Shown piece by piece: positions 1,175 through 41,130 of a stretch of 64,000 nucleotides of DNA; the first letter of the stretch is position 1, and each line of letters opens with the position of its first letter. Source of the stretch: Syncephalis fuscata S228 (taxonomy: Eukaryota; Fungi; Zoopagomycota); NCBI GenBank assembly GCA_025786725.1, contig JAHLTZ010000013.1, positions 124,001 to 188,000 on the forward strand. Reading direction: 5' to 3'. Both the position numbers and the translations under genes were made by a program. The notes below the pieces were generated by a model. The model ran no database searches. It saw nothing but the letters and a program-made list of their open reading frames with translations, and had not been told where the DNA came from.

Positions 1175-1182
1175 TATAAATA
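1175..1182 (+). promoter_or_regulatory. TATA box (TATAAATA) upstream of the secreted Cys-rich peptide gene
   Basis: TATAAATA ~140 nt upstream of ATG 1320. Confidence 0.5.
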
Positions 1183-1319
1183 GCCCACGAAATACACACA
1201 ACCAACTGCAATAGCATCATTACACTCTACTTCTTGCTATACACGCACTACTATACACTTTACACCAACCATACTCTATTGTCTGCTCTGTTTGTTTGTC
1301 TTAACAAATTAATATCAAC

Positions 1320-1541
1320 ATGAAGCTTTCTATTGCCGTCATTTGCACTGTCGTTGTGGCGCTTGTGGCCGTTACAACCATGGCGGGTGCTAATCCAGCT
1401 TTAGTTCGTCGCGCTCTAAAAGGGGAAAGTTGTCCTGATTGCATAAACAGATGCAAGTGGGGCATTTTTCGCACTAAGGAGTGGTGTGCTAGCGAGAAGG
1501 GATGGTGCTTTATTCCATGTCAATGTCCTACTTGCCCGTAA
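1320..1541 (+). CDS. Secreted cysteine-rich defensin-like prepropeptide
   Basis: Hydrophobic signal peptide, short pro-region ending VRR (Kex2-type site), 42-aa mature part with 8 Cys including CxxxC, GxC and CxC; good start context (caacATG). Confidence 0.8.
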   Translation: MKLSIAVICTVVVALVAVTTMAGANPALVRRALKGESCPDCINRCKWGIFRTKEWCASEKGWCFIPCQCPTCP

Positions 1542-4500
1542 TCGATGGTTCCAAGACATCTGCATTGGTAGTGCAATCAAGCCACTATTCCAATACACTT
1601 TAGGTATATATTCGGTGAAAAGCAAGACCATTTGACAACTACACCGTCCAGTCTATTTATATATCAAGTTTTGGCCAATGCTCCGGTTTATCTAGTCTTT
1701 AATCAATGGAATCACTATTTTAGCAACATATTTGCATCTAGTTGCTTCTATTCAACTTTGTAAGCTTATAATAATAAATCTATGGTTTCATCTTAGCTAT
1801 ATACAATCAAATTGCTATACCTATAACCATGTTCTATTTGCATTCAATAATGACAATTATCAATTAAATAATTAAATTAATAACAAAATGTGTATAGTTA
1901 TATCGCCTAAGCTATAGGCATAGATTGGTATGGATAGTAGCAAAGCTATTATTATCATATAGCCAAGTAATAGTATGCTGAAATTAGAATAAATACGCCT
2001 TTTAATAAAACACGACAATAAAGCATACAATATTATAAAACAAAATAAATAGACAAAACGAATACGTGAATAGTAATAACAAAACTATACTGTATGCAAT
2101 TAGCCAATAGCAATGAACGAAATGAATCAAGATCTGCTAAAAGAATACAGCTAGCAATAAACTTTTAGCTTTTATTAATATAATTTCTACAATTTACAAT
2201 ATTAATGATATAGACAGACATATAGTATGTGTATACAAGACAGATATGTACAGTACAACAATAATGATAAATAAATAGCTTAATAACCAATGACACTCAA
2301 CAGCCAGTTTCATCTTCAATAAAGCGGATATTTCGTTTAAATGTGTGGCTATTATAGCTATTTAACTGCCAAATCACACTAAACAACCAATAGCATGCTC
2401 AATATTGTGGAAAAAGTGATCTTTATTTAGTTAATAAAAATACCATAAGATTTGATACAAATCAAGTGGTTTAAATGATCCGTCACAGCACCCTCTTAAG
2501 CTTCTTTTGCCATGTCCCACGACTCTTTTAAATTAGAACATTGGAGCGACTACTGCGACATTTAAAAGGAATGTTACGAGTAGATTGTTCTAGTTTATCA
2601 ATGACAAATGCCATGTTGACGGTTTTATTTTGCACATCTTCACTCTTGCTTGATACACCAACTAATTAATTCAAGTTGATCAAAGCAATAACACTTTTAT
2701 GTAATTTGGAATTATTTAATTGCTATATCTGATATTCAAAATACTCTAAACCAATCTAATCTTATTTGTTGGTTAGATTTAAATCTAAAATATTTATTAA
2801 TTAAATTATTTTTGTTTGCATTACAGTTTATTCATTTTGATAGTTGCTTCATTAGTAGTTTGTATTTATTCAATAAAAACGTTTATTTCAATATTAACTA
2901 CTGTTTCAACACAATTGGTGTTAATCTTTACATAGCATGTTTTGTATTGTATTTTTTAAGTTGCATTTGCCACAAGTATATTGTCGAAAGTCTTTTAACA
3001 AATAAAATACGATTGGCATTGCCATTAATATTGCTACAATTGACTAAATTACATAAATAGGCAAAGTTTTAAATTAAAATACATTGTATTATTATGATTA
3101 ACTTTTTCTCATCAAGGATTTTAGCTTTGTAGCTTTTATTATCCAATAATATTATAAATACACAATACTATTAATCAAATAATAATAAAATGCCTTTTTA
3201 TAATCCAATCTATTTTGGCTTATTAATAGAATTTATACAGTTACAACTTTTGTTATAAATCTGCTAACTTGTTATTGTTACAAGTTAAAGTCATTTGATA
3301 CTAATAGTATTTTCATTAAATTGATATCAAATATTTAATTAAACTACTATTTATTTTTCTTTTTTGATTACTTGGTCAATGCTACATCATTTTATTACTG
3401 TTGTTGTAACATTGCCGTTTTTTAGCAAATTAAAGGCAAACCAAGCTTTTAATAAAAAATAATAGCATCTATTAAGCTATTACAATTGTTAGTGTATGTT
3501 AAATAATTAAATATCTACTTAATAATTTTATTTGTACATCTTTTGTTTTACATTTGAGAATGTAGCAACATCATTTGTAATATGTTTATTTCGTACTAAT
3601 TATAATAAAAGGAATTGATGACTTGATAGTTTTATTTATGCTTATTTGAAATCGTAATTTACTATGGTAAATAATTCTTCAAAATTCCGCATTTCATTCT
3701 GACTCCCAGTTTTTGAGTCCTCAAAGCAAATTCACTCCAATCAGAGTCATGTCGTTATCATATGCAATATAGTTATGTTACTTCCTATTGAAATATTGTT
3801 AATAAATTGATTTAAACAAATAATGGAACATACTATTTGATTTTGTTGAGACATTTGAGGCCAATCATTGTTGCTGTTGGTCATGTATAGAAAGATTGAT
3901 CAAATATTAATAGAAACCATATGATTGCAATTCCATATCATTCCTCATTGATTGTTATTGTATCTATGTACAGCATAGATTATTGCATCTGAATGGTCTT
4001 TCTATTTTCTAATATTCTAGTATTGCATTATGGGCATATTTTTAATGTAAGATCAAGATTAGTATAATTATTATAAAGTTGTTTATTAAACAGCCACTTT
4101 TCCTATAGCCAATCTGACTAAATATATGGCATTTTGAACAATTAATATCATAAATAACGATATATATATTAAAGCAATAATAAAGATAACTAATTAATTA
4201 CATTACTGTATTGATAATTACACATAAATCAATTAATGTTAGATGTAATATTATATATGGAATAATGATGAAATAGGTAAATGAAAATATGAAAATATTA
4301 AGAAAAAATGTAAAATGAGTAAACAAAAAATGTAAGAGTCAAAGTACAATAGCTCCTTCGTCCTAGAAGTAAAAATGTAGTTTTTAAAAAAATTACTATA
4401 ATTAGTAATAATATCGTGCCATATTATTTAAATAAAGAATAGCGCCTCGTTTAAAGTTTCAAATCAAATGGATATGGCAATGGATATTCGTTGATTGGCC

Positions 4501-4596
4501 ATAACAAAGTCTTCATATTTATGGCCATTATTTGTATTTGTAAAGAATTATCTCAATTTCTTCATTTTCTTTGCTAGTTATTGCCAATTTACGAAA

Positions 4597-5704
4597 ATGT
4601 TTAGTGTTTATACCAAAGTTACGATTACCAGTTGGATATGGATCTTTGCAATGTTTAGCCAATCTGCTATGGCATGGCCTAGTTTGTTTGCGAAAAGTAG
4701 TTTATTAATATCTGATTTGTGTAATACTAATGGTTGATTATGTAGAATTTTCACTTCAGGATCTTCCATACATTAACGTGAATTCATATAATGTACTGTA
4801 TCAGAAAGGCCTTAAGCTGGAAAGCCCATTTCAACCATCTAACGGAATCTATAAAACATCTGGAGCGTATATGGTAGAGAACCGTAAAGTAAAAGTTCAT
4901 ATAACATGTGCTGATGACACCGATGAAGCTAAAATGAGTAATTCTGTTAAAATTTATAAAGTATGTGCCATCGGTAACATTAGCAATCAATACTTACTAT
5001 TATAATTTGTACAAAAACAGAGTCTTAAATCTCTCAATCTGCCAGCTTATAACAACGCATATACGGCAGGGTCCTATGTTGCTATACCTCTGCGTCGTTT
5101 TTCATTAAGAAAAGGGCATTGCTATATTACGCCAGCAGAATGTGAAATGACACTGATGCAACACTGGTCTATGGTAGCTTCATTGCCTCAAAGAGATCAG
5201 CTTAGAATCGAATCTCTGGTGCTGTTTCGAATAATGCAAGGCAAGTGTTTAAAAGGTATTGTTACCTCTACTAATCTAATAACGCACTAGCTCTTGACTA
5301 TATGGCCTATACTGGTTGGATATACGATGTGGATGCTAATAGTGAGTGTTATACTTTTGTTTACTCATAATAGCACTTATTTACTTTCATTAGATATCTG
5401 TGTTAATCCCAATTCTATGATTTTACTTATGAATGTCGAGTCAGCTGAATATGTTCTTCCACCAGGCATGACAATACATTCACATGGCCGAATGCCTGAT
5501 TTAATAGTGGAAAAACTTGACATTGTGAAAGTCCGTTTACAACGAAAGTTTAGAGATTTTTTGCAACATCCAGAACATTATATGGACATGAATGGGTTAG
5601 ATCTGCTTCCTAGATATACAGAGCAATGGGAATCGTCAACCGGTGAATCTATATCACTTCCTGCTTACGAAAGTATTTTTCCCGAACTAAATAATTCCGA
5701 GTAA
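4597..5704 (+). CDS. Secreted degenerate protein-kinase-like protein (5 exons)
   Basis: Signal peptide MFSVYTKVTITSWIWIFAMFSQSAMA; introns ~4698-4745, 4961-5020, 5241-5290 (GC-AG), 5342-5393 give one ORF containing GHCYIT..ALDYMAYTGWIYDVDANNICV..ILLMNVESA, which resembles kinase subdomains V-VII with HRD and DFG lost. Confidence 0.65.
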
Positions 5705-23697: not shown

Positions 23698-24542
23698 ATA
23701 TGATAGATATCTACGTTTATAAAGCTTTGTTATGTTTATGGTCCGTTGTTGTCTTTTTCTTACAAATTCTAGTTATTAATTTTTGTTGTTGAATAATGCA
23801 AATGAATAGCTACTATTTAATATAATGAACACTCATTTAAACATCATTATCAATGACATGTACAATTTGCGATATATGACGAGATGCGTACAAAAGAATA
23901 ATTAAGCAATGATCACTATCCGCACAAATAGCTAAATGACTAAGTTTGCATGAATTTTTATTATTATTACAATTTTAATTCAATAGCGCCAAATATGTTT
24001 TTGAGTAATTATTACATTATGTAAGCATAATGTGCCACAAGTTTATCATTTGAATACGATATAGTACATGATTTAGTTCGACAATAGTAACCTTGTTCGG
24101 CATTTTAATTTATTTTACAGCTCCGACTTGTTAAATTAGATTACTTATTTATTGTATCTATGTATATCATTAATATTGATTATACAATTTATATGTTATT
24201 AAAAGTAACTTTACTAAAAAATTGTATTATTTAACAGTAGCTATTATTATTTGTATAATAGCATAAATTAAAAAAATAAATGACTAAGCCTTTACTATTT
24301 ATTTATTTATTCATTTTATGAGTTTGATTATAGGTCATTGTGTTGTTAATTGCTTGCAAGTTAAAACATTAATACCTTTTTGATTTAATATTATCTATTG
24401 CTATTATTTAATAAAATACTGCTACAATTACTTATTATTATATAGATTTTCAGCAAAGTTTTATTTCTATGGCAAACAATATCATGAGGAATTTCGTTTC
24501 AGCATTATACGACCAATCGCAGAATACATTCATAAAGTCAAT

Positions 24543-26078
24543 TTAAAAGGTTGGTAGACCAGCGGTAGCATCATTGGCTGGCAGACCACCAGCGGTAACT
24601 TGATCAGTAGCAGTTTTACCAGCAGTGGCTTTACCAGTAGCAGCTTTACCGGCAGTAGCTGAATCGGTTGGTAAACCATCAGCAGCAGCTTTACCAGTAG
24701 TAGCTGAACCAGCAGCAGTATCTTTGACAGTAGTAGCTGAACCAGCTGATAGACCACCAGCAGTTGTTGTGTCAGCTGGAAGGCCACTAGCGGTAGTCAT
24801 GTCAGCTGGGAGGCCACCAGCAGTAGTCATATCAGCTGGAAGGCCACTAGCGGTAGTCATGTCAGCTGGGAGGCCACCAGCAGTAGTCATGTCAGCTGGA
24901 AGGCCACCAGCAGTAGTTTGACCAGCTGGGAGGCCACCGGCGGTAGTTTGACCAGCTGGGAGGCCACCGGCGGTAGTCATGTCAGCTGGGAAGCCACCGG
25001 CCATGGTTGTGTCAGCTGGGAGGCCACCAGCAGTAGTTTGGCCAGCTGGAAGGCCACCAGCCATGGTTGTGTCAGCTGGGAAGCCACCAGCAGTAGTTTG
25101 GCCAGTTGGGAAGCCACCGGCCATGGTTGTGTCAGCTGGGAAGCCACCAGCAGTAGTTTGGCCAGCTGGGAAGCCACCGGCCATGGTTGGATCAGTTGCG
25201 AGACCACCAGTAGGAGACATACCATTAGGATTCTGGGCTTGCATATTTGCTCTATTGGCTTCTATCTGAGCCTTTTGCATATTCTGTGCACTGATAGTGG
25301 TTGCTGCAGTCACACCAATTGAAGCCGCATTTACGGCTGCATTAGTACCCACAGTAAACAGATCCACATTAGTTGCTCGTCTGTCGCTTCTATCAAGAGC
25401 ATTTACAGTACTAATGTCAGATACTTCGCCGCCATTGGGTGTATTTGCGTTAGACCTATTTCCAGGAGCGTTGGCATTGGTATTGCCTGTCGGTGTGTCT
25501 GGCTTAGTAGTTGGCGATCCCTTCAAACTATCTGGCTTGGCTGGAACAGGCGGTGGATTAGTATTCCTGGTTGAAGTTCCCTTGCCTGGAGCATTAGTTC
25601 CTGTACTAGGTACAGCAGGAGTTGTAGGTGTATCGGGCACTTGTCTTGAGCCATTGGGACTCTTGACTGGAGTAGTTACTTTGTTGGGTACCTTAGGAGG
25701 TGGAGGAATGGCCACTGTTCCGGGCATTTTAGAAGTTGGAGGAATGGCCACTGTGCCAGGCACTTTAGAAGTTGGAGGAATGGCCACTGTTCCAGGCCTT
25801 TTAGAAGCTGGAGGAATGGCCACTGTTCCGGGCATTTTAGAAGTTGGAGGAATATTGTTTACTTTGTTGGGTACGCTGGGAACCTTGCTTGATGCATTTG
25901 GCACATTAGCTGAGCCTTTAGATTTCTAATAAATAATATCAGTACTATTATTAAATTAAATATTAGTTGCAGTACTCACGAATGGATTTGACCATGGTGC
26001 GGCATCGACTGAAACTGCATTCGTAGACAATACGGCTAAAAGCAAGGCGGCGCTAAGAATCGTTGTGCTGGCACGCAT
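24543..26078 (-). CDS. Secreted Pro/Thr/Gly-rich repeat protein, paralog 1 (2 exons)
   Basis: Signal peptide MRASTTILSAALLLAVLSTNAVSVDA; GT-AG intron ~25927-25979; 12-aa repeats (KxPGTVAIPPxS) x4; central helix; 10-aa repeats (TTAGGLPADM/GQ). Confidence 0.85.
24750..25200 (-). repeat. Coding minisatellite, 30-nt unit, about 15 copies
   Basis: Repeated aggccaccagcagtagtcatgtcagctggg-like units. Confidence 0.9.
25700..25852 (-). repeat. Coding minisatellite, 36-nt unit, about 4 copies
   Basis: Repeated ggaggaatggccactgttccgggcattttagaagtt-like units. Confidence 0.9.
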
Positions 26079-26398
26079 GATGATAAACAAAAGTCACAAT
26101 AGCTAACTTGGTTTATAAAATCAGCTTATAACAGAATGTTATAGGTATTCAAGCGTGTGTTTAAAATGTATGACAAATCAATGTCACAGCAGTCGTGTAT
26201 AAGTTGCGTAGAAATGGATAAGATGGATTGTTTGCGGTATAAAACTTGAAGCAATAGCGTGAAATAATCAAAGGACCGGCCTTTATCAGCGTGAATTTAT
26301 AAGAAAAACTCAAGAGCTGTATCGTAGAAGAAAAGAAGCGTTCGCGTAACTGAAAATCGGTTAATAATGAACTGCAAAATACATTGCAAATCAGCTGG
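25991..26398 (-). repeat. Left arm of a 408-bp near-identical inverted repeat
   Basis: Reverse complement matches 34264-34671 with about 6 mismatches and no indels (by eye). Confidence 0.95.
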
Positions 26399-27028
26399 TT
26401 TATATGGAAATTGTTTGGAAGAACGTGTTATTGATAGCATCTACATTGGTAGAACAAAACCAGTTGGTTTAGATTGCACGTAGGGTAAATGTATCAAATT
26501 TGAAAGTATGTTTCAAATAGTAGTTACGGAGACGTTTATTGAACTATATTACCGTCATAATAAAATTCATCACAGGCCGTAAAAAGGAAATAATGAAACT
26601 GCCTGTTTTTAGCTGCCATAGCACACGACACGACTCAGACGCTGTTTGTAACGAAAATATATGAAACTAAACACGTTGTCGCATCATTACCGTTTGGTTA
26701 ATTGTTTTATTATAGTGGGCGCAGTTTCTTCTTTAGATGTTCTATCGCAATGCAATTACAATGTTACCGATCCAATAATGACATCAGTGTCATACAATAG
26801 CGTTTTAACACCATGCTATCCGCCAACGCTTGAGACAATACTGTGGAGCAGCTAACGTATAGGCCTAAACACTAGTTAGGTGTAATCTAGGTTGGGTAGT
26901 TGGCTACTACTGGTGCAATAATATCGAATGATTTTGATCATGCATTTTGAAAAGACCGCTGTCTATGAAAATACTGATCATCAATAATAACATTCAAACT
27001 TTTTATTTTTATTTTATTTTTAATTACA

Positions 27029-28500
27029 ATGAATTTTTCACTCTCGCCGTCAGCTGGCCGTCGCGGCCGCTTGCTGTTAGCCGGCAAACCGGCAATTGCA
27101 ACGCCAGGCTGTCTCCTTAACTGTGTCAAAGGGGCTGTTCCGCATCTAACACCCGACATGCTCAGTCGTACAGGACCACGTACCGTTCAGGTTCCGTTGG
27201 CTCATTTGTAGGTATTGACGTTTTTTGGTACACGGAACGCGTTATAATCCGACTTACTGATGCTTCTGTAGTGCTGATCGTTCACCCTCGGCGCCCGAGA
27301 CCTTTGATGGTACTTTGGCAAAATTTCTTAATGCGGAGGCGTACACCGTTATTGGCGACCTACTGGACGTTGCGGCCGAACAGCCCGAGGCGTCATGCTC
27401 AGACAAATTTGTTACTGTGCGCACATTGGCTGGTTTGCGAAAAGTAAGCTATTAATGTTGTATGCTTTATATAATTTAATAAAAGTAATACATTATAGGT
27501 GTCGACCAAAGATTATGCTGCCATGATGCATGGCTACAATCCGGATATCTGTGTCGCGCCTAGCGATCCGATCTGGGCGGCCGAGACACTGCCGTCGCGT
27601 AGTCGTGCCAACAAAGCATCCAGACGTACAATGCGGCTACTTGATCAATTTTTGGCCGAAATGCAGGTAATAGTTTGTCGGCGCTTATTGACATAGCTAA
27701 TTTAATCAGAGCAAACCTGTACTCGCTGTATTACAAGGCAGCCATTATCCAGAGGAGCGTGTCCAATCAGCAATTGAAAGCAGCAAACGAAATGTTGATG
27801 GTAATTGCTAAAGCACACCAATTGTTTGTTGCAAATAGCGCTAATTAGATTGTAGGCTTTGTTATGAATTTGCGTGGATTATCATCAACTGAAGCAAACG
27901 TCGATAATACTGTATCAACCCAACTTTCCGCTCTGCTGCTTCACTCGACTAGCAATATTCCAATGGACAAGCCACGCTTTGCTTTTGGTGTCTCATCAAT
28001 TGGTAATATTATACATTAACAATAACTGGCTATCTAAATTATAGTCATTAGATCAAGTGCTCGAAGCAATTCAAGCTGGTGTTGATTTATTTGACGCTAC
28101 ATTTATTCTATGGACGACTGAGAAGGGACATGCACTGCACATGAATTTAGGTGATAGCAAAGCTGGCTCGGCCAGCTATCAAGTACTCGATCTTTGGTCA
28201 ACCGATCGCCGTAGAGACTTCAAGCCATTTGTAGAAAGCTGCCAGTGCTTTGCTTGTACGAGGCATACACGCGCTTACTGCCATCATTTGCTACAAACAC
28301 ATGAAATGCTTGGCCATGTACTGCTAATGTGCCACAATGCCTATCAATACGATCAGTTTTTTGCACAAATTCGTGCTCACTTGGACGCTGATACTTTTGA
28401 TGATGCGTGCACTGCCTTTATGACAATTTATCAGAATACGCCTCAATTAGAGGCCACAGGCACAACAAAACCGCAAGTACGCCAGCGCTTTGAAATATAA
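27029..28500 (+). CDS. QTRT2: Queuine tRNA-ribosyltransferase accessory subunit (6 exons)
   Basis: TPGCL..GAVPHLTPD, AVLQG..EER..SA, DKPR, GVDLFD, CQCFAC..HTRAY.HHLL..HEML..LL..HN; all introns GT-AG and in frame. Confidence 0.9.
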
Positions 28501-31418
28501 TTAAGATGCTGACAGTTGATTATATTGTAATGATGATACAAGTCATCATACTAAATAAAAGTTGTTATAATTATTCTATGGATGTAATGTATATGAATGC
28601 ACATTGATTTTTACTATCAAAGACTCCCATTATAGCATTTGTCCCATAACAATATATATAGTCAAATTAACTAACAAAATAGCACTATTCTAATACCAAT
28701 ATAAAACCACTTTAATCATATTATGATGATGGCTTCCATAATGCTCACGCCATATTTACGAATGAATAAAAGCAGTTGTATTTCTAATGCATGTTGCTAC
28801 AGCTATGTTGATTTATGTTTGTAGTAAATACCGCGCAATTGTATATACATATTAGCACATTTGCTTAATCAGTTTTTGTTAATTGTTGAATGCGAATTAA
28901 ACAGAATAATCAATTTAATAATGTAAATATATATAATTAAAATGAAGCCATGTGTCTATTACTACAAGTTTGCATGATTGAATAGAAACAATTGAATTCA
29001 GACTTGCTGGTAATATAATAGTTTCATTGATTAAAAATTGCATAAATTGCAGCACTGTCTAGAGCTTAATATGTAAACGAGTTGAGCGGCAGTTTTTAAA
29101 TGGTCTTGCTTGCTGCCGAACGTATACCTAAAATATATCAAAGTAGCAGTTCAATCATACTAACAATGCTAATGCCATGGAAGACTTGGTTAAACTGTGG
29201 CTATAAACAAACGCAACGTATGTTGTTTAATTATCGCTTACAATGATAATATATAATACCACCCACTTTCTATTGGTATTGTTATTAGCATAGAAATGCA
29301 TAGCATGCAACTGGTACATAAATAACAATATTACTCACAACCTATCAATATAATTAACCAAGCACACACGGTGTATATCTTATGTTTACTGGCATAGTTA
29401 ATATTTAATAGCACGTATCGCCTATTATTATAAGGTTTTAGGCATGCATAGTGTATAGCATGTAATTATTTTCATTGTATTTTACTGTATATTAGTGTAA
29501 ATTTAGCATATTTATAGCACAATGTATTATTGATGTAGCATCTACTATGGATATACTGACCACAAAAACCATGAAGATAGTACGAACAATGGGAATAAAA
29601 AGTTTTATAGTAATGTTGATTTGCTAAAAGAAACAAGCAGAACAAAAAGTAAGTATGCTTAATATAAAATAGTGAGTGATGAGTATTTAGCAAAAAATAT
29701 AGTATGATAATATTATAGCTAATTAGCTGTGTGTATTACGTGGACTATTTGAGGTTACAGTTATGCTGAAATATCAACATGCTATGTTGTATGTTATATA
29801 TCAATATATCGATAATGTAATAGTATGCTGTCTAGCCTTTATCTCAACCTGCTTCGGCAATTGCACAGATGACACAGTAATGCTAATGATCCGGTATAAC
29901 GGTAATAAAATGCACTTATTACTATGTACTGTGCCGTTACATGCAGTCCAATCATGCGATACAAAACTGAATATACTAATTCTACAAAAATAATAATGAT
30001 GCACTACTATGCCTTTATTTCTGCTTCCGCTAACAATCTTAATTCCAATATCTGCATATATTGCAGACACCACTTAAAGCCGATGCAACAACATTAGCGC
30101 ATTAAGCTTGAATTTCTTTACAAATATTTACTGATGTGCATAAACTAGTTGTGGCTTTTTAGACCATGAAAGTGTGATGCCTGGTGTATGTGTGAATTTA
30201 ACTCAACATTATGGCGAATTTACAAAAATAAATAGCGCATTTAATTTACAAATGCAGTACATCTAAATATATTATAGTATATTCCGTGCAATCAATACTA
30301 GTCTAAATATCAGTTAGGTAAACTTGGCTGAAAATTGATTGTACAATAAGCAGTTTTTGCGGCGTAATTTATTGTGCATTTCCAGTAATAAATCATTCGA
30401 CACAGTCATTGATTTTTGTGATTTGAATTAAAGGTTTGATCGGTCATTAGTTTTTATAAAATATACAATAGTTTTATATTTAAAATACGCGTCTAATATG
30501 GACTCAACAAAAATACGTAAATAAATGCATATCCCGAATATAGCATTGGTATTTATGTTGCTAATGTTTGTCGCTATTTAATCAAGCCTTAGTGCAACTG
30601 CGTAGTTATGCATACGATGCGTACAGAACATCATTCGAAACCGTGGTTAAACCAGTGACGGAAGGCTGTTTCAAAGTGCACTTTGTATATGTTTAATCAT
30701 GGCAGCAACTTAAGCTGTAAAAATACTATTTAAGGCTTTGTTTTATTCTTAGCATTGCTAGTATATAGCTAGATGTATCCTCGATTTGCATAAACCATTG
30801 TGTATGATTTGCAGTATTCAATATTTTTATTTTTGTCTACAAAATTTGCATACTGTGCCCTATTACTACGTCATTTCCCCTGAATCTACAACAATTCATC
30901 GCTTTATAAATGTATGCCAATCTATAGAAAGCAAGTCTTTGTTGCTCTATAAATAACATTACAACATAACAATGTATAAGAGCAAATAATTCAAAGGCCG
31001 AGTAATTTCTTTGTTGCTGTTTCTGCTTTGAGTTTAAACTACTAAAATCTACATTAAGCGCAGACGATCAGCGCTATTGCTTAATGCGTAGATCAAATAT
31101 ATTTATTATAAAATCTCCTGTTACTTAGCATTTACTGTGAGCAAATAGAAATACTGTCATTATAGTTATCTAAGTGTTTGTGCTGAAATAAGGCATGCTG
31201 TGTCGGCTTTATTTGTAGATTTAAAAACAAAGAAACAAGCCAGCACTGGATTTACAAAGACTTGATTGTAATATTGCTATTTAAACGGCAATCAATTTTC
31301 TAAATCTACAGCGTGTATTTATAACTTTGAAACACTACTTATTAGTTATAGCATTTGTATTCCTAGTATTTTGCAATATCCAAGCGTTTTGTTTATGAGC
31401 ACTACAAGCATCTAGAAC

Positions 31419-32357
31419 ATGGTCAAACTGAACTTATTGACTGCGCTGGTTGTTGCCGCAATTGCTACGTTGCACGGTGCAGTAGCTATCCCATTCAATC
31501 CAGTACTCAAGATTGCTGGAGGTGACAGCACCACAGTCACTCAGTTTCCGTTTGCCGTACGCATCCTATTTGGCGCTGGCAGCGTATGTACAGGCTCTAT
31601 TATCAGCAGTCGTTGGATTTTAACAGCCGCCCATTGTGCGGTAGATGCTGAAAAATCAGAAGAAGCAGGAAAAGTAGTTTTGGAAGACCCATCAACATAT
31701 CGCATCAACATTGGACAAGACTCAAACATAACCTACACTCCAATTGTTCCAAAAACTATCTACGCACATCCCAAATATAACTGGACCGAGTTTATTAACG
31801 ACATTGCTTTATTGGAATTAGGTACTTCAATTCAATTCAATGCTGCCATTCAACCGGTCAGGCTAATAAAAGGTGAATCTAACCTATTGCTCAGACAAAT
31901 GTTTACGGTTGTTGGATGGGGCAGTGATACAACACAAAAGCTGGTATCAACACTAAATCGCGTCAATGTTCTTAAAGGAAGTTCAGAGTTTTGCGCCAAA
32001 GCTCTTCCAAGCTATCAGCCTTATTTTAACCAATTACTGTGCACTGAAAATGGATTTGGAAAAAATGTTTGTCATGGAGATTCTGGTAGTCCATTATTAA
32101 TCGAAATAGCGGATTCTAACGGCACTACTGGCATGCAAGCCGCTAAATCGTGGGTACAGGCTGGAACCACCAGCTTTCTCTACAATAGTATAAAAGAGGA
32201 CACAAAATTCTGTGGTTCAGATGGTAATGTTGGATTTTATGCGCGTATAGATTATTTTGTATCATGGATTGCCAAAACTACCGGTTTGCGTAAGAATCAA
32301 TTCACAGCACCGCTTCCGAAGGAATTTGAAGTCAACCGAAATAAGCTAAGCATTTGA
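31419..32357 (+). CDS. Secreted S1 (trypsin-fold) serine protease
   Basis: Signal peptide, K|IAGG activation site, TAAHC, NDIALL, GDSGSP triad; intronless. Confidence 0.95.
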   Translation: MVKLNLLTALVVAAIATLHGAVAIPFNPVLKIAGGDSTTVTQFPFAVRILFGAGSVCTGSIISSRWILTAAHCAVDAEKSEEAGKVVLEDPSTYRINIGQDSNITYTPIVPKTIYAHPKYNWTEFINDIALLELGTSIQFNAAIQPVRLIKGESNLLLRQMFTVVGWGSDTTQKLVSTLNRVNVLKGSSEFCAKALPSYQPYFNQLLCTENGFGKNVCHGDSGSPLLIEIADSNGTTGMQAAKSWVQAGTTSFLYNSIKEDTKFCGSDGNVGFYARIDYFVSWIAKTTGLRKNQFTAPLPKEFEVNRNKLSI

Positions 32358-34263
32358 ATAATTACAAACATCACACGAGCAAAGAATCTATGACCATATG
32401 TAAAAATAACACACCCTTTCAATGATCTGGACATCAATTATCTGAATTTAATAATGTCCTATTTTAATACGTTGTCATCTCATGCTCAATCTTATTTTTT
32501 TTCTACACATACTTATTTACAATGCTGTGCTATTAATTTGTTTACGCTTTTCAATTAGCTAAAAGCCAAGGGACTTTGATCAGTTCATTTCCTTCCCCAT
32601 TACACTTGGAAAATCGAATTATCAAGTACATTCTCTGTTCTTGTAAGTTATCCCTTCGCTAACTTTATGTTTCATCGTTTTAAATCTGCTCAGTCTAAAA
32701 TATTGTAAAAAGCCATGTTTTATTTCTCTTGTCTCTACCAGTTATTATTCTGTGCGATCCATCAAAACTTTAAAACGCCGCCTATAGTTACATTAACTGC
32801 CTTACAAGTCCTTATTTTCAGCAAATTGTTTTCCCTTATCCCGTTGTCACCAGCAGTAGATGTTGTTTCAGCACGCATATACATTTTATTAACTATAAGA
32901 TTTTGAAAATAAATAACTGAAATCATTCATTAAACAAAAGTGCATATAATAGTAGTAGTAGGGGGTTATAATTGGCCGTGTAAGGTAGCTGCACCTATGC
33001 ACCCAGCACTGATTGCTTTTTCTGTCGACTTGGATGGCAAAAAGGTCTTCACCTGTTTTATTGATTCAACCAATCTGCATCTGCTTTTGTCAATTTCCAA
33101 CACACAGTATTTCAAGGCTGTTTCAAATTGAACAAAGACATAGGAAAGCGTAGAAGATCTCTATGCAAACAGCAATGAGCAATTGTTGATACCTGATGAT
33201 GCGGTGCCCGTTCTATTGTTTAACTCGTCATTTTATAACATTGCTTTTAATGTTCTTGTATAAGGCAGATTTGATAATTATGCCAAATTATATTAAGCGA
33301 AAATGTCGCTATTCATAGCAGCCATCAACATGGATTAAAATTAGGCTGCAGTTTGACTAGTGGCAAATGTTGATTGTTGCCCTAAACCGATAGTAGCACC
33401 TGATGGCATTAATAACCGTATTCATTATGATAGTGTAGGCCTTGAAGGCGTGACATGTATGTAACCGATATATTTGTGACAAGTTACGCAAAATCGTAGA
33501 CAAATACATCAATATTAGTGATAGTTTTACCTTTGTATTGCTCTAACGATGCACACCTATGTTTGTAAAAAACGAGACCTTAAAACACTGTTTTATAACA
33601 TTGACATCATCATTGAATTGTCATTGTTGCTAATCAAACACTCATAGAATATTTAAGGATTTTTTGCCATAATAAAAATGAATAACTAGTAATAAGGGAA
33701 GTAAGATTGATCTAGTTACTAGTTTTGCTTTTCGGAGTCGATAAAGCCCCGGGTTTGATGTCAATCGAACCAATCCTTAAATAAAAACTTTTGTTGATGT
33801 AGCACATTGCTACATCCTAACTTACAGCGTGACTTCTGTCCTTACCCGTTCTCAACAGTCGGCCACCTTGTTGAACTGTTGAGACTGCAACAAGTTAAAG
33901 CAAGATTTTTTTATGTTATCGTTTGTTTAAATAAAGATTGCATTTTAATTTAAAAATAAATAACTAGCAACAATAGATGTAACCTGTTTAGTTTTATTTC
34001 ATTCCATTGCAAACGACGTCAAAGTTTTACCATATGAATTTCTAGCAACTAAAAACAGGTTGTTTCATTCCTTATTTCTTAAGGCCTAGAATGATTATTA
34101 ACATCCCAATAGTATGGTTTAATAACTGTCTCCTTAGCCGCTATTCAAAACATATTCGCAAATTTGATACACATAGTACACGTGTCCAGTAAAACTTGCC
34201 AATATCATTCTATTATTGCTGATATTATCAATAGCACTATTTTCCAAACAATTTCTATATAAG

Positions 34264-34671
34264 CCAGCTGATTTGCAATGTATTTTGCAGTTCATTATTA
34301 ACCAATTTTCAGTTACGCAATCACTTCTTTTCTTCTACGATACAGCTCTTGAGTTTTTCTTATAAATTCACGCTGATAAAGGCCGGTCCTTTGATTATTT
34401 CACGCTATTGCTTCAAGTTTTATACCGCAAACAATCCATCTTATCCATTTCTACGCAACTTATACACGACTGCTGTGACATTGATTTGTCATACATTTTA
34501 AACACACGCTTGAATACCTATAACATTCTGTTATAAGCTGATTTTATAAACCAAGTTGGCTATTGTGACTTTTGTTTATCATCATGCGTGCCAGCACAAC
34601 GATTCTTAGCGCCGCCTTGCTTTTAGCCGTATTGTCTACGAATGCAGTTTCAGTCAATGCCGCACCATGGT
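34264..34671 (+). repeat. Right arm of the 408-bp near-identical inverted repeat
   Basis: Matches the reverse complement of 25991-26398. Confidence 0.95.
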
Positions 34672-35420
34672 TCGGTCCATTTGTGAGTATTTTAACTAAT
34701 GTTTAATTTAATAATGGCACTAATATTATTTATTAGAAATCTAAAAAGCCATCGGGCGTGCCAAGTGCACCAAGCATCCCTCCAACCCCTGTACCTGCTA
34801 AATTACCTAGTGCATCAGGCATTCCAACTCCAGCTAGAAGTCCTATTGCACCATCAGTGCCACCTAAGCCAGGGCACTTAAGCGCACCACCAGTTGGTTT
34901 AAATGGCGGCGGAATCCCTTTAACTAGAAATCCTATTCCACCACCCATTCCATTTAAACCAGATCACTTAAAAGGACTGCCAATCACTCGACCAAGTATT
35001 CCGCCAATCACTCGACCAAGCATTCCGCCAATAATTAAACCTAATTTAGGCACTATTAGCAACACACCTGGTCGTCTTGCTGCAGACGCTCTTGATAAAG
35101 CGAACAAGCGACAGCATAGATTAGATATGATACGTTTGGGCGCTGATACCATCCTAGGCGCTGGCACACTTGTTTTAAATGGAATGACCGTGGTCAATGA
35201 GCTGGAACTACGGAAGGCCGAGCTAGAAGCCAAGGCAAGGGCGGCTTCACAAGAAACCAGTACTGATGATTCCTCAGATGATCAAAATAATACTGAGACA
35301 GAAGCCAATGAAAGTTCGACTTCACAAGGAACAAGTGCTGGTGGCATAGCACTTAATCTAAATATCAATAATCAAGCTAACAATGGTGGCACAGTATCTG
35401 CTCCAGCTACTACTAATTAG
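34584..35420 (+). CDS. Secreted Pro-rich protein, paralog 2 (2 exons)
   Basis: Near-identical signal peptide to paralog 1 (one substitution); intron 34683-34735 at the same position; shared PPPxPxKPDxLKG and ALD+..D..G...KA.IEA helix; homologous 3' flank. Confidence 0.85.
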
Positions 35421-36387
35421 CCTGCTGCTAATCAAGCTACTACTGGTTTACCGGCCGATCAATTTAACGCTGGCCTACCATCTACCCAAGCTACGTCTTA
35501 GGTATCTCGCTAATTGTGCTGACTCACCACACAGTGCAATGTTAAAATGACTTTATGAATATAGTCCACTATTAGTCGTATAATGCTAAAATAAAATTTT
35601 TGGTGCTATTGTTTGCAATAGAAATAAACCTTTATGCTTAAGTCGATGAAAATAATGAACAACTACAGCACTAAATATTATTAAACAATATTATTAAACA
35701 ATATTGAGCCAAGAAAACAGCAATAATCTTATTTACATGTTGTTATAATAATAACTTTGTAACCAAACTCACAAAATGTAAATAAAATAAAACAATTATT
35801 ATTATTTCAATCATTTCATTTTGAATTATTTTATGATTTTACTTTATTTTTACCAAATATAAATACAATAGTTTAGCCATTAGTTTAATGGAAATTCAAT
35901 ATAATTACCATAAAGCAATGCTAAACTTTTATCTTAAGCTACTAGCTAGCTAATCTATATGCTAAATATTGGCAAATTGCGTACTTTGATTAATAAAAAT
36001 GACATGTTAATAAAAAGGTAAAATTGATGGATTTGTTTGCAATTTAATGATGGCTATAGTGTGTCGATACATTAAATATCTACATTGACGCTGCTTTAAT
36101 TTATTAGCATAGTAGACTCCAAATAACGTGAAATCTTTGAACATCCTAATTTGCTACATTACACCTCATTATATCATAACAATATTGTTAATATTTTTGG
36201 GACACTCCCATTCTGTAGTTTATGCTCATAACACTGCAATTACCCATTAAGCAGAGTATAATCAAATACGTGCAGTAATATAACGTATTTTTAGATCAAT
36301 TGCTTATGATTATAACACATATCAATGAATAATGCTATTAAATAAAGATTGTGCTAGATTTAAACATCCTAGCTATTTTGCTATTTA

Positions 36388-39296
36388 TTACTTTATCCGA
36401 GGAGTACGATAGAGCGTACGTAGTAATAGTGAGCTTATAATTACAGGTAGCACCGACAGTATTGAGCCGGCGCTTGCAATAACTGGGGCAATTCGAAAAT
36501 GCTCTAAGGCATAGAACACACCTGCTGCGGACGGTATTAACGCTATATTGTAGGCAAATGCCCATACAAAATTGATACAAATACGCCACAGCACAGCACG
36601 GCATAAATCCAATAGTACGGCAATATCGGTCAGGTTATTGCGCATAAGCACTGCCCGTGCCGCCTGCATGCTAATTTCGGCACCGGAGCACAGCGCAACA
36701 CCAAGGTGACTTTGTGCAAGAACAGGTGCGTCGTTGACACCATCGCCCACAAACATTACAACGTGGCCCATATTTTGCAAACGTTCGATAGCTTTTACTT
36801 TATCGCTAGGTAGACATGCTCCATGTGCATGTTCAATGTCAATACCTACACGCAAAGCAAGACGATGAACTGCGCCGACATTATCGCCGCTCACCAAGTG
36901 TATTTGTTTGCCTAGAGAGTGAAGCCATTTAACGACCATTTCTGCATTATCCCGCGGCTTATCTTCAAGTGCATAAGCATGTAGAATATTTACAACTAAT
37001 GCTACTACAACTATTGTTGTATTAACATTAAACAGCTAAACTAATACATCAACATCTACTCACCAGTACTACCTCTCTTTTCGTGCTGAGCAGCCCATTT
37101 TCTTAAAGCATCAATTGCAATACAATCTTGACTATTGATCCAGTTGGCAATAATCCATTCAGACTTGCCAATTGCAATTAATTCACCATTGATTTTACAG
37201 GTGTAACCATCTCCTGGCACTTCTACCATGTCTACAACTCCGTTCTGTTCCGGGTCATCGTATTTGGCAAAATGACGTGTCAATGCCCGAGATACTGGGT
37301 GTCGGCTGGCCGTAGAGGCTGCACCGATTATTTCATGAAAACCAGCATGGTTATCTGTATTGTTTAAGCAATATACGCTAGCAGCTACTACACTAAATGT
37401 TCCTTCGGTAAGTGTGCCGGTCTTGTCGAATACGACAGCTGTTACCTTGGCGCCTTGTTCAAATGCATTTCCATCACGAACCAAAACACCAAGCTTTGAT
37501 GCAAGACCTGTGGCCACGACCAGCACAGTAGGAACAGCTAACAAAAGGTGAGATAAAGACTTGTTAATAATAGAGCACTTACCCAATGACACGGCGCATG
37601 GACATGCCACAACAAGTACAGCAATAAAGAAATTGAGCGAAAATATGACAGGTGGTAGATTTTCCGTATCAGTCACTACATTTCCAAGAGTCAGCCCCAG
37701 CCAAGTGAATAGGACAAGAAATGCAAATGCAATGGCCGCTGGGCAAAATATCATAGCAATACGATCGGCCAGTTTTTGCACCGATATTTTCGATGCTTGT
37801 GCCGATTCGATTAATCGCCCAATCTCGGCCAATGTTCCCTCAGTTGCAGCTTTTACGCAACGGATACGTAACTGTCCGGTCACTAAGATTGTGCCACCAG
37901 TAACTCGGATACCAGGATTTTTCTCAACAGGAACGGCTTCCCCTGTAACGAGCGACTCATCAGCTTCCCCTGAACCATCTAATACAAGTCCATCAACAGG
38001 AATTGATTCACCTGGCAGCACTAAAAGCTCATCGTGGCGCTGCACCAAACAAATATCTATAATCTTTGACTGGAGCGGTTCATCGATTACTGCTATTGTA
38101 GACTGTGGATTAGGTTCCATTGCTTTGACTCCATTAGAAGCATCAGCTATTGCCGGAAAGCCTGCTGGCTGTGTTGCACCAAATGAATAAACATCGGGTT
38201 TATTTAGAATAAGGTGTGCTGTGTTGGCTTGTAGTTCTTTCAACTCTGATAGTGCACGAACTGCTTTATATTTTCCAAAGTTGTGCAAATACCGACCTAA
38301 TAAAAAGAACATAACCAGCATGGCATTCATGTCAAAGAACATGGCTAAACGAACATCACCAAGAGTGACTGCTGTTATAATAATGGCGGCCAATGAAAAG
38401 CCATATCCAACTGTAGTCGAAAGAGTCAGTAAAGCATCCATTGTAACTTGTCGTGTATAGCGCAGTGAACGGTAGGTAGCCAAGTAGAACGGCCATACAA
38501 ATAATTGAACTATAGTGCCTAATACAAACATTAGCCAGTCACGGGGCATAAGTGCTCGATACATAGGATGCTGAAGAATATTTGGAAAAATCAGTTCAAT
38601 AACAATGGCTGGAATGGCAAAGAAAGAACATAGCAGTAACAGCATAAGCCGTCGATGCTGGTGCTTTCGCGTACGATCACTAATCGGCATTTGCTCTGGT
38701 AGTCCAGCATTTATATCGGCAAGCGATAAAGCGCGCAAAAGTGTACGTGGGCCAGTAATATCGAGATCATAAATAATATGGTAAATGTAAAGAGGATTCT
38801 TTGAAGAAGAAAGAGCACGGCCAGAATTGAATGATAGAGCAAAAGATTTTGTATCTCGACGTTCTTCTACTTGATGTACTCCAGGTTGCTTTTTTAATAC
38901 ATTGACTACCAACCCCGAGGATAATTGCTGTGAAGACGATAGATAGCCATAGATAATCAACGTTGTAGCAGAAGGTTCATCGTCTCCAGCCATTTCAGCT
39001 TCATAGCCCATAGTGCGTATTTGATTAATAATAGCTTCGTTATTTAATGTTGGCGTCGAGACATAGGAAACTTTGACTAATTGTAGCATCGAGCTGGCAA
39101 ATACCTTGCAAACACCCGGCAGCATTTCCAATCCGTTGGTTAAAGATGCTTCACAGCCTATCAATAGTTATTGTAGGCTATAGCTATTTAATAATCACGT
39201 ACTTGAACACATCATGCCATAAACGTGCATCTTTACTATGTTTAACGATTGTCCATTCGCATATTGGTCATGGCTATCAACGATAATATCAAGCAT
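36388..39296 (-). CDS. P1B-type heavy-metal-transporting ATPase (Pca1/Cu-ATPase-like; about 4 exons)
   Basis: GMMCSSC (split by an intron), DESLVTGEA, CPC, DKTGT, SRHP, SGD, GDGVNDAP, AYN. Confidence 0.93.
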
Positions 39297-41130
39297 TGGT
39301 CCAATTGATGCTGTGTTTCATTAATTGTACATTTCTGATTAGCATATAAATGTTTTACTACTAGCTTAATTACCTTTAAAGCAGTTATGAAATAGAGTGT
39401 AACTAAAATTATAAAGATTGGACGTAGCTATCGGTCTATTTGGTTGTTTTGACAATTAATGCGTTATTATTGCAGTGTTTAAAAGCCTACTATTGCTGTT
39501 ACCTTGCAAGCTGTATTTGATAAATATGAGCAATGATGTGCTATCTTGTTGAAGTTCAGTAAGATTTGATAGGCATTCAAAATGATGACTTTACTAGAGA
39601 GAGATGCTATGGCAATTCAGACTTTATTTATCGACAACTTTGACTGGTTTATCATAAAATAACTTGGTGCTGTGTATTTTGAGCAATTATTGCCATTGGT
39701 CACAAATTACTAAAAACAGTTTAATTAGGATATTGCGAGGGAATACGCTAGTTATACATGGTTACGCATGCATATAAGGGGAGAGAGAAATACGCCACAA
39801 GCCACCAAGACTGTATTAGATAACCAAATAACACAATGCGCAATTATTGCCTTTGAATAAGAATTTGTCATCAATAAAGTATAATTTCTGCTATTACTAT
39901 ATTTGCTCACTATAATTATCTAGATTTTCCCACGCTCAGAATTGTTAAATGCGCACTTTTTGCCACTCCTATTTATAAAGAAAATAGCTATCTAAATAAC
40001 TATTTCTATCGATAAAAACTATATATATGTATTATTTACTTTTTAGTTTTATTTATTAATAAAATGTGTACAGCATGAAATACTGTGTGTCATTTAACAC
40101 TATTTTACAATCTGTTGTTTATAAATAATCTATTAATCCTCAGTATGATTTGGGATCAAATGGATATATTTAATAATGTTCGCGCAACTAACTACACATT
40201 TGTTCTATGGAACATGGAGACGAGTAGTGAGTTATGTCGGCCGTCAAATTTATTACATGATAAATCTATTATCATGCTTATTTTATACAAATAGATATAT
40301 CGTTACATTCTCGCAGTATTGCAATATTGATACTTGCATTATAGTATTATTCAACCTTCTACAGTCCCATACAGATTTATTTGACATTGGCTAATCCAGC
40401 AATTAATAGACATAAACGAGCAGTCCAATACATATTTTTAATAAAGCATTAAGCTTATGTCTACTTATTTTATTTATTTTATTTGTACGTATGGCTCAAT
40501 AAGTAAGCTAAGCCGGGTTTATAAATAATAAAGCTAGATTTAAGAAAATAGCCGTTATAAACAAAGTGTAGTCACTATAGTATATATTTATATATATTAA
40601 AACGAATATACAATGGCAAAGCATATAACGCAATGAGTAGACTGAGTAAAGTATGTTGGAACATATAATAAACAATAAAGTGTGTTTAGTATAGCATATA
40701 ATAATATAAGATAATGTAGGATATAATAATAATAATGTAAGTAAATGGTGGATATATACGTACTGGATAATGAATCTATGATGATGAGTATTTCGATGAT
40801 TGATGTCATTCACCATTCATCACCATGTTCAATAGAACGAGTATTATTAAATATAGCCATTTGATCATCAAATCACAATAAATCATTGACAATTTACATC
40901 AAATTATATAATAGCATCAAATTACATACTATGCTATGCAATTGGCGCAGTTTAACTTAATAATAAATGTCAGGTTTACATACTTTTAAAGGAAGAGTAA
41001 AATTTAAATGGCACTGTTTTATACATGTGTTAGCATAATAAAAGTAACAAAATTAAGATAATTGACTAGAAAAATGGTTTTACTATTTAGCTGCTTCGAG
41101 GTACATTTCTGTTGCCCGACTCGACGTTGT

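Follow-up and report, generated by a model that had tools for sequence, protein, structure and literature searches.

Probable recent gene conversion between inverted genes for an orphan secreted protein of the fungus Syncephalis fuscata

Organization of the locus

The window analysed here is a 64-kb stretch of the Syncephalis fuscata genome. All coordinates refer to the whole of it, and negative values denote positions to its left on the same contig. It harbors two head-to-head genes, A and B. Together with a third copy, C, located 16 kb to the left of the window, they form a three-member paralogous family coding for an orphan secreted protein with strong expression. The family has a common layout: the signal peptide is followed by a disordered region rich in proline, then by one long helix and finally by a tail of Thr/Gly/Ala/Pro repeats. 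The features are collected in Table 1.

Table 1. Features of the locus in window coordinates.
Feature	Position	Strand	Description and evidence
3′-flank homology	24455-24546	.	82% to 35542-35633; outer limit of the ~2.3-kb unit of the old gene A duplication
Gene A exon 2	24543-25925	-	mature protein, 460 codons + stop; ORF, repeat arrays, RNA splice joint, homology to C
Left inverted-repeat arm	25886-26454	.	569 nt, 93%
Gene A intron	25926-25979	-	54 nt, GT..AG, phase 0; 87% identical to B intron
Gene A exon 1	25980-26078	-	signal-peptide exon of 33 codons ending in ...APWSNPF; matches B and C at 93/99 positions
Gene A transcribed 5′ leader	26079-26564	-	~486-490 nt; RNA contig
Perfect A = B block	26105-26338	.	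minimum tract 26151-26323; wholly within leader
QTRT2-like gene (queuine tRNA-ribosyltransferase accessory subunit)	27033-28561	+	five confirmed introns; spliced RNA contig, GT..AG; PF01702
Right arm of ~10.2-kb inverted segmental duplication	30271-40511	.	protease, gene B, copper-type P-type ATPase; self-blastn, 250-bp identity profile
Secreted trypsin-family (S1) protease	31419-32357	+	single exon, 312 aa; PF00089, E 8.8e-36
Protease divergence island between arms	31756-32222	+	135 mismatches, no gaps, dS 0.66
Hairpin-rich repeated element	33741-33990	.	~250 bp, upstream of B; missing in copy C
Right inverted-repeat arm	34208-34776	.	includes perfect block 34324-34557
Gene B exon 1	34584-34682	+	signal-peptide exon of 33 codons ending in ...APWFGPF; no difference from copy C
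Gene B exon 2	34737-35420	+	227 codons + TAG; translation

In all three genes, a phase-0 intron after codon 33 lies between the signal-peptide exon, conserved at the nucleotide level, and a mature exon which has diverged. A, B and C share the first 72 nt of exon 1 without a difference, and the first 28 residues, up to the A-P-W sequence, differ between A and B at one position (D/N). The mature parts share 29% of their amino acids between A and C (E 5e-15) and 64% between B and C, the latter pair with a dN/dS of about 1. Exon 2 of gene A encodes, in this order, proline-rich repeats of 12 amino acids, a conserved PPPxPxKPxxL motif, the long-helix region, about 15 decapeptide repeats and a GLPA..AGLP tail; its nucleotide repeat arrays are of 36 nt and 30 nt. 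Gene B stops at a point where copy C continues, and the conserved C-terminal tail lies in frame beyond this stop (35421-35501).

A genome search for further copies of the shared leader and signal exon on other payloads, as recommended by the first-pass annotation, did add copy C, but the 29.4-Mb assembly contains only these three, all clearly homologous over their whole length. Searches with the protein sequences, using spliced gene models exon by exon, place the family on its own: Pfam yielded no domain in A, B or C apart from a sub-threshold decapeptide-repeat match for A, a word-based protein search with C came back empty and nothing usable emerged from an ESM Atlas feature search. A lone HMMER profile match among 1.84 billion representatives (E 1.6e-5), to a 775-aa protein of helix-turn-helix-like repeats, was dismissed as spurious, the query being a secreted protein. 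For the conserved part, AlphaFold predicts a disordered region plus one long helix and nothing else, which did not warrant a fold search.

Between the two genes lie a QTRT2-like gene and a secreted protease, as first annotated. The assignment of the former is backed by its best PDB matches, which favor QTRT2 (E 8.5e-20) over QTRT1 (1.4e-6). It is divergent from gene A, and the intergenic promoter region between them measures ~470 bp. The genome contains 10 or more paralogs of the protease; exact-product look-ups for it and its sister copy found no independent contigs on record. The remainder of the interval is AT-rich DNA without long ORFs.

Transcription of gene A

The RNA data consist of short de Bruijn contigs from three small runs, placed on the left arm over 24301-30300. 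The splice joint of gene A (25925/25980) is seen directly in a contig which skips 54 nt, with CT..AC on the + strand, at a depth of 1691. The spliced B/C-type mRNA appears as a loose end at 25991. Another contig, continuous with exon 1, spans 26007-26564 at a depth of 531 and carries A-specific variants; farther upstream the depth falls to ~4. It is identical to the A leader at 557 of 558 positions, the difference lying at 26411. In this de Bruijn contig the block sequence and the flanking variants of A match, while the interior of the block is not phased to one copy. Since the RNA contigs are unstranded, we infer the strand of the leader.

Because RNA covers 26007-26564, the sequence previously labelled a proximal promoter is mostly transcribed 5′ leader. 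Upstream of the presumed transcript start, A and B are about 45-65% identical. The proposal that homogenization enforces co-expression is not supported as worded, since the homogenized block is mainly leader and signal exon. The leader of gene A contains a 47-codon uORF which is specific to this gene. Rfam and tRNA scans of 24000-36000 returned no matches, and the consensus of the promoter/terminator scan is bacterial and thus uninformative here.

Geometry of the inverted repeat

The inverted repeat itself is real. The arms given in Table 1 show 93% complementarity and lie 7753 nt apart, and within them the 408-bp core arms (25991-26398 and 34264-34671) are identical at 402 of 408 positions (98.5%). 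The announced perfect block of over 200 bp measures 234 bp (26105-26338 = 34324-34557). From this block, A/B identity descends in steps, upstream to 85% and then 64%, downstream to 94%, 87% and below 50%. Diverged homology farther out is likewise borne out, both upstream (26477-26616 versus 34045-34184, 71%) and in the 3′ flanks. The first-pass annotation placed the loss of identity directly after the APW residues. This has to be corrected: the rest of exon 1 is 94% and the intron 87% identical, exon 2 opens with 9 identical nt, and the collapse occurs at about 25916.

A probable conversion tract within the leader

Copy C makes the history of the block legible. Around the 234-bp block, within a 586-bp stretch, B and C are identical at 352 of 352 positions; they differ at seven sites (four substitutions and three one-base indels), all inside the block, and at all seven A equals B. 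The flanks unite B and C against A at 14 and at 7 or more sites, and the tract unites A and B against C at seven contiguous sites (26323-26151), without interleaving and without any site at which A and C agree against B. The probability of such contiguity among 12 core sites is 6/792 = 0.008, and that of all seven differences landing in the block is (234/586)^7 = 0.002, or 0.01 when they are counted as five events. As the seven sites represent 5-6 mutational events in one assembly, these statistics are modest (p about 0.002-0.06 by test).

Since all B-C differences fall inside the A = B block, we conclude that this is a non-reciprocal conversion tract of 173-234 bp, and of the mechanisms proposed at first, gene conversion is the one which the data uphold. 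The tract is sharp-edged and lies far above the flanking paralog identity, its tree conflicts with that of the flanks once C is added, and the exchange left both partners with the same alleles. It is wholly non-coding leader and therefore cannot be explained by protein-level selection, a point which the mosaic dS of the larger arms described below also makes. The seven in-block differences amid 352 of 352 identical positions fit a transfer from A to B: A is likely the donor and B the recipient. In principle, the seven sites could also be changes private to C.

We accordingly read the A/B near-identity as recent, ectopic and non-reciprocal conversion, added to older, decayed tracts, with the same process acting across the 10-kb arms; from the sequence comparisons we assign this reading a probability of roughly 0.8. 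Gene A would be an old duplicate of the B/C lineage (29% amino acid identity in the mature part, about 45-82% DNA identity in the flanks). In the latest event, 173-234 bp of the A leader would have been copied into B after the last B-C homogenization. Older, partly decayed tracts may have produced the shoulders of 85-96% identity in the outer leader, exon 1 and the intron; we infer the recurrence, as well as the donor direction, from the pattern of shared sites. Constraint on the leader and signal peptide may help to retain the homology which seeds new conversions. In the shoulders, constraint and conversion are inseparable with three near-identical sequences.

Could purifying selection suffice? 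On this account, the leader and signal exon never diverged between A and B/C, owing to translation control, mRNA targeting or secretion, and the seven changes of C are recent private decay. The three copies are indeed at least 97.5% identical over 408 bp, all retain a 7-codon uORF (26384-26361 in A) and short conserved motifs survive in the diverged upstream DNA. The leader also folds somewhat better than shuffled sequences (z = -2.5), a value too weak for a structure claim, and copies as alike as these three lend no power to a covariation test. However, 234 non-coding bases would have to be conserved near-absolutely in A and B yet changed by 3% in C, and B and C show no difference at all over the adjacent 352 bp although A and B are less conserved there. 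The sharp steps from 100% to 85% to 64% match no functional boundary, and selection cannot yield the 30- to 160-fold jumps in synonymous divergence at this locus. We regard constraint alone as quite improbable. Strong constraint on the leader could nevertheless add to the identity.

An artefact of assembly or polishing, in which cross-mapped reads of A and B created false identity or allelic contigs were wrongly joined as the two 10-kb arms, appears very improbable. The assembly is a single one in 371 contigs, and small errors or variants do occur, as at 26411, where RNA and genome disagree, and in the left protease copy, which lacks 1 bp. Against such an origin, A-specific and B/C-specific variants are retained directly beside the block on both sides, and spliced transcripts of both the A type and the B/C type are recovered independently in the RNA contigs, with a single mismatch over the 558 nt of the A leader. 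The arms, set apart by islands with dS values of 0.13-0.66, by indels and by the insertion of a repeat element, do not resemble collapsed or allelic copies.

Mosaic divergence of the 10-kb duplication

Gene B is embedded in a large inverted repeat, which the first-pass annotation had not described. The left arm occupies -22233 to -12229 (about 101768-111772 of the contig), and the spacer of 42.5 kb includes gene A. The arms are about 99% identical, with a background mismatch of 76/7982 (0.95%), but synonymous divergence between them is strongly mosaic: dS is 0.004 in the ATPase and 0-0.012 in the ends of the protease, versus 0.66 in the protease island and 0.127 in the mature part of B/C. The protease island spans the C-terminal barrel with the S1 pocket. 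The hairpin-rich element corresponds to a 225-column gap in the arm alignment, and two further copies (72-77%) reside on other contigs.

The two protease copies are mutually nearest (60% amino acid identity versus at most 54% to others). Import of the island from a present paralog was considered and rejected: an assembly search found no sequence closer than 68-71% to either copy. With no closer donor, old divergence with homogenized flanks is the preferred account. Conversion on a larger scale would keep the B and C arms about 99% identical and spare islands of old divergence, namely the mature part of the secreted protein and the specificity half of the protease.

Does the interval invert?

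The other mechanism put forward at first was a flip-flop, in which crossovers between the A and B arms repeatedly invert the 7.75-kb QTRT2-protease interval and swap upstream regulatory DNA, in culture or between strains. The geometry is suitable: inverted repeats flank the segment twice, as the A/B arms and as the nested 10-kb repeat, homologous recombination could act on a repeat whose perfect core is 234 bp long, and conversion tracts are sometimes resolved with crossover. In Saccharomyces, homogenized inverted repeats on chromosome XIV provide a parallel, with both orientations among strains (PMC9731477). However, these repeats are 4 kb long and orientation is stable on laboratory timescales.

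Gene B shares its distal leader, upstream DNA, body and protease and ATPase neighbors with C, collinear over 10 kb. This common gene order indicates that the assembled orientation is ancestral, and we see neither a derived orientation nor the footprint of a reciprocal exchange. Two reciprocal crossovers (flip and re-flip) would have swapped alleles and yielded A = C; the tract instead has A = B, hence the exchange was non-reciprocal. No strand-changing joint was reported on 24301-30300, where the contigs, built from k-mers and thus prone to break at a 234-bp repeat or to collapse it, could hardly reveal one. The interval ORFs include no recombinase, in agreement with the first annotation, nor any other candidate for a recombinase-driven switch. 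Repeated inversion between the A and B arms is therefore decidedly improbable.

A broader variant, in which nested recombining inverted repeats (0.4-0.57 kb with a 7.75-kb spacer, inside 10 kb with a 42.5-kb spacer) undergo some crossovers and generate inversion isomers in the population, is improbable. Were it true, isomers would re-pair the promoter which A shares with QTRT2 and the element-bearing promoter of B with differently built secreted proteins. It would further represent a flip/flop of the Saccharomyces chromosome XIV type in an early-diverging mycoparasite, with selection on host-facing parts keeping the divergence islands.

Implications

The mechanism is ordinary, well-known gene conversion and no new one is revealed. 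The value of the locus lies in an internally controlled case of ectopic conversion, with a donor direction legible from the third copy, in a barely studied lineage, the Zoopagomycota, here an obligate parasite of other fungi. Secreted-protein genes in this genome would have a mosaic evolution, in which homogenization recurs in leaders, signal exons and flanks, and the mature protein and the substrate-pocket half of the protease stay or become divergent. Such evolution bears on the choice of candidate host-interaction proteins. It matters for annotation, since reads map to the shared leader and paralog-specific expression is not measurable from them, and for the dating of duplications, because identity reflects the last conversion and not age.

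Comparison with known systems

A secretory cassette joined to a hypervariable mature peptide is found in the conotoxin superfamilies of cone snails and in the precursors of frog-skin antimicrobial peptides. As in S. fuscata, a separate signal exon conserved even at silent sites accompanies a rapidly diverging mature part. In contrast, the peptides there are small and their families large, whereas the three genomic copies here encode low-complexity proteins of 260-490 aa, and their conserved block runs ~400 nt into the leader, with a demonstrable conversion tract.

On chromosome XIV of Saccharomyces, both flip/flop orientations occur across strains and species, between almost identical repeats of 4 kb (Salzberg et al. 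2022, PMC9731477). There, too, continually homogenized inverted repeats of fast-evolving, strongly expressed paralogs flank a multi-gene interval (PMC9731477). In S. fuscata, however, one orientation is known and the core of the A/B repeat is 0.23-0.41 kb long; the nearer analogue is the 10-kb repeat of the B and C arms with its 42.5-kb spacer. The mating-type flip/flop of Ogataea polymorpha and Komagataella is induced, reversible and directly observed, and moves MAT genes to centromeric silencing (PMC4238957, PMC5720833). Inverted repeats flank the segment in these yeasts as well, and inversion would alter the regulatory context of a gene. The S. fuscata locus, known here from sequence, differs by its non-reciprocal exchange signature.

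The closest counterparts are cases of interlocus conversion with islands of retained divergence, such as the primate red/green opsin genes, RHD/RHCE and paired immune receptors. In these, non-reciprocal copying homogenizes one part of a duplicate while another remains divergent, with sharp tract edges, conflicting trees for tract and flanks, and silent and non-coding sites involved. Further examples of interlocus conversion are CD300A/C and CEACAM (PMC12447643, PMC8860441). What sets S. fuscata apart is that homogenization affects the 5′ leader and signal exon of a gene for an orphan secreted protein of a fungus, that 7.75 kb separate the two inverted copies, and that a third copy reveals the likely direction of transfer.

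Inverted repeat between genes A and B

Genes A and B, which encode secreted proteins and lie in opposite orientations, share with a third paralog, copy C, a cassette comprising the 5′ leader and the signal-peptide exon. Their gene models were treated, and searched per exon, by reference. A repeat search of the window recovered the inverted repeat between the two genes and two weaker inverted pairs (see the table). The 408-bp near-perfect inverted repeat described in the first-pass annotation is real: pairwise and three-way alignments of A, B and C gave 402/408 identical positions in these arms, which include a perfect block of 234 bp, far above chance.

Coordinates of the features (window positions; negative values lie left of the window; C35 is the contig holding the window and copy C)
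Feature	Position	Strand	Remarks
Gene A start ATG	26078	minus	
Gene A exon 1	26078-25980	minus	33 codons
Gene A intron	25979-25926	minus	54 nt, GT..AG
Gene A exon 2	25925-24543	minus	
Gene B exon 1	34584-34682	plus	
Gene B intron	34683-34736	plus	
Gene B exon 2	34737-35420	plus	
A/B inverted repeat arms	25886-26454 / 34208-34776		569 nt, 93% complementary, 7753 nt apart
Perfect block	26105-26338 = 34324-34557		234 bp
Weaker inverted pair	26477-26616 / 34045-34184		71%
Second weaker inverted pair	24455-24546 / 35542-35633		82%
Cassette in copy C	C35:107568-108133		16 kb left of window
Duplication arms	-22233..-12229 (C35:101768-111772) / 40511..30271		spacer 42.5 kb, about 99% identical
S1 protease island	31756-32222		467 bp

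Probable gene conversion versus inversion

Copy C served as the reference for informative sites across the leader. These sites are strictly ordered: B and C agree against A down to 26339, A and B agree against C at seven sites (26323, 26298, 26295, 26158, 26154, 26152 and 26151), and B and C agree against A again from 26104. The contiguity of the seven among the 12 core sites has a chance probability of 0.008. Around the block B and C are 100% identical over 352 bp (distal leader 111/111, outer core 116/116, leader end 26/26, exon 1 99/99), and all B–C differences (7/7) fall inside it, where A equals B; the probability of this by chance is about 0.002, or 0.01 if the differences are counted as five events. 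This is the pattern expected from a transfer from A to B. Such a transfer would postdate the most recent state in which B and C were alike; its tract spans 173-234 bp. The shoulders of 85-96% identity (outer leader, exon 1 and intron) look like older tracts, possibly aided by constraint.

The first-pass annotation had proposed either gene conversion or a flip-flop inversion, in which ongoing recombination between the A and B arms inverts the interval with QTRT2 and the protease. The ordered sites and the A-to-B tract support the former and make it more precise. The inversion is unsupported and seems unlikely. A flip followed by a re-flip, thus two reciprocal crossovers, would swap alleles and generate sites where A equals C, but the three-way alignment contains no such site within the tract. 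Furthermore, the arrangement around B matches that of C along the entire arm, which identifies the assembled orientation as ancestral.

Copy C and the segmental duplication

A search of the 29.4-Mb assembly found three copies of the cassette. Self-comparison of 108 kb placed B and C in opposite arms of a ~10.2-kb inverted segmental duplication, each arm carrying a trypsin-family protease, a secreted gene and a P-type ATPase, with gene A and QTRT2 located in the spacer. This arm pair is a much better inversion substrate than the A/B pair originally flagged.

The arms differ at 0.95% of background positions (76/7982), but their divergence is mosaic. Between-arm dS is 0.004 in the ATPase and 0-0.012 at the protease ends; the mature parts of B and C differ by a dS of 0.127, with dN/dS about 1 and additional repeat indels. 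An island in the S1 protease, covering the C-terminal barrel, shows 135 mismatches between arms (29%) and no gaps (dS 0.66, dN 0.30) and is sharply bounded by flanks that are about 99.6% identical. No closer relative of either island was found elsewhere in the assembly (best 68-71% at the nucleotide level), and the two are mutual nearest relatives (60% amino acid identity versus at most 54% for others). On these comparisons, the simplest reading would be an old duplication kept alike by conversion, except in the mature, presumably host-facing, coding parts.

Six residues before the catalytic serine, at the trypsin-like specificity position, the residue is N in the window protease and D in the left copy. 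The left copy also lacks 1 bp at the site corresponding to window 31688; this is a frameshift or an error in the assembly, and the public 295-aa model seems to skip it. Secreted S1 proteases form an expanded family of at least 10-12 loci genome-wide, several of them in tandem on the contigs C113, C4 and C306; in-frame stops occur in some.

Upstream of gene B, a hairpin-rich element of ~250 bp (33741-33990) is missing from copy C; contigs C307 and C68 carry two further copies at 72-77% identity. The element probably represents a small non-autonomous repeat that inserted into the promoter region of B.

Transcripts and leader

The public run X1 is RNA: splicing at GT..AG is seen in its contigs for QTRT2 and for the gene A intron, and one contig terminates in adapter sequence. 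Word depth is ~1000-5600 for gene A versus ~300-400 for QTRT2; being contig depths, these values allow a rough comparison only. A spliced B/C-type message is seen as a 255-nt loose end at 25991. A 558-nt RNA contig (depth 531) with A-specific variants runs from exon 1 (26007) to 26564, upstream of which depth falls to ~4; most of what had been called the proximal promoter is thus transcribed leader of ~490 nt, whose strand was deduced from its continuity with exon 1. The promoter proper of A occupies ~470 bp between the transcript start and the QTRT2 5′ end (27033), where A and B are only ~45-64% identical save a few short conserved motifs. The wording that conversion enforces co-expression is weakened, as the shared block is largely leader and the promoter regions differ.

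Two short motifs, near reverse complements ~50 bp apart, are kept in A, B and C (26590-26680 / 33980-34070) amid upstream DNA otherwise ~64% identical; they lie immediately 5′ of the inferred transcript start and are candidates for promoter elements. A 7-codon upstream ORF (26361-26384 in A) is conserved in 3/3 leaders, and a 47-codon one (26440-26297) is private to A, its ATG missing in B and C. At 26411 the RNA contig has G versus T in the genome (plus strand), where A, B and C are identical; this reflects different strains, an error in the assembly or a change at the RNA level.

The secreted proteins

A and C share 29% identity over 173 aa (E 5e-15) and a common GLPA..AGLP tail, and by these similarities are true paralogs; the B and C proteins are 64% identical. 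At the point where copy C reads on through Ala/Pro repeats, a TAG terminates gene B (window 35418-35501); in frame behind this stop lies a conserved C-terminal tail that C shares and whose motif also occurs in A. Gene A contains coding repeat arrays (24623-25280 and 25669-25848), one of 30-nt units in about 15-22 copies, encoding a motif related to the C-terminal tail of copy C, and a second of 36-nt units in 4-5 copies. Pfam, word, Atlas and full HMMER profile searches assigned A, B and C to no protein family. The conserved part is predicted to form a single ~64-residue helix (pLDDT about 80) after a disordered, proline-rich stretch. S. fuscata belongs to the zoopagalean fungi and parasitizes other fungi. 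We infer that A, B and C are secreted proteins that the parasite makes in abundance, probably wall-associated or adhesive ones.

Comparison with known systems

Mechanistically, this is ordinary ectopic gene conversion in which islands of divergence have been retained. The analogy with the Ogataea MAT locus fails on every checkable feature. The best structural parallel is the flip/flop region of Saccharomyces chromosome XIV, where a segment lies between homogenised inverted repeats made up of fast-evolving genes; strains differ in its orientation, yet in the laboratory it is stable (PMC9731477). Whereas both orientations are known there, one is known in S. fuscata, from the assembly. The S. fuscata locus adds a case of a known process, ectopic gene conversion.
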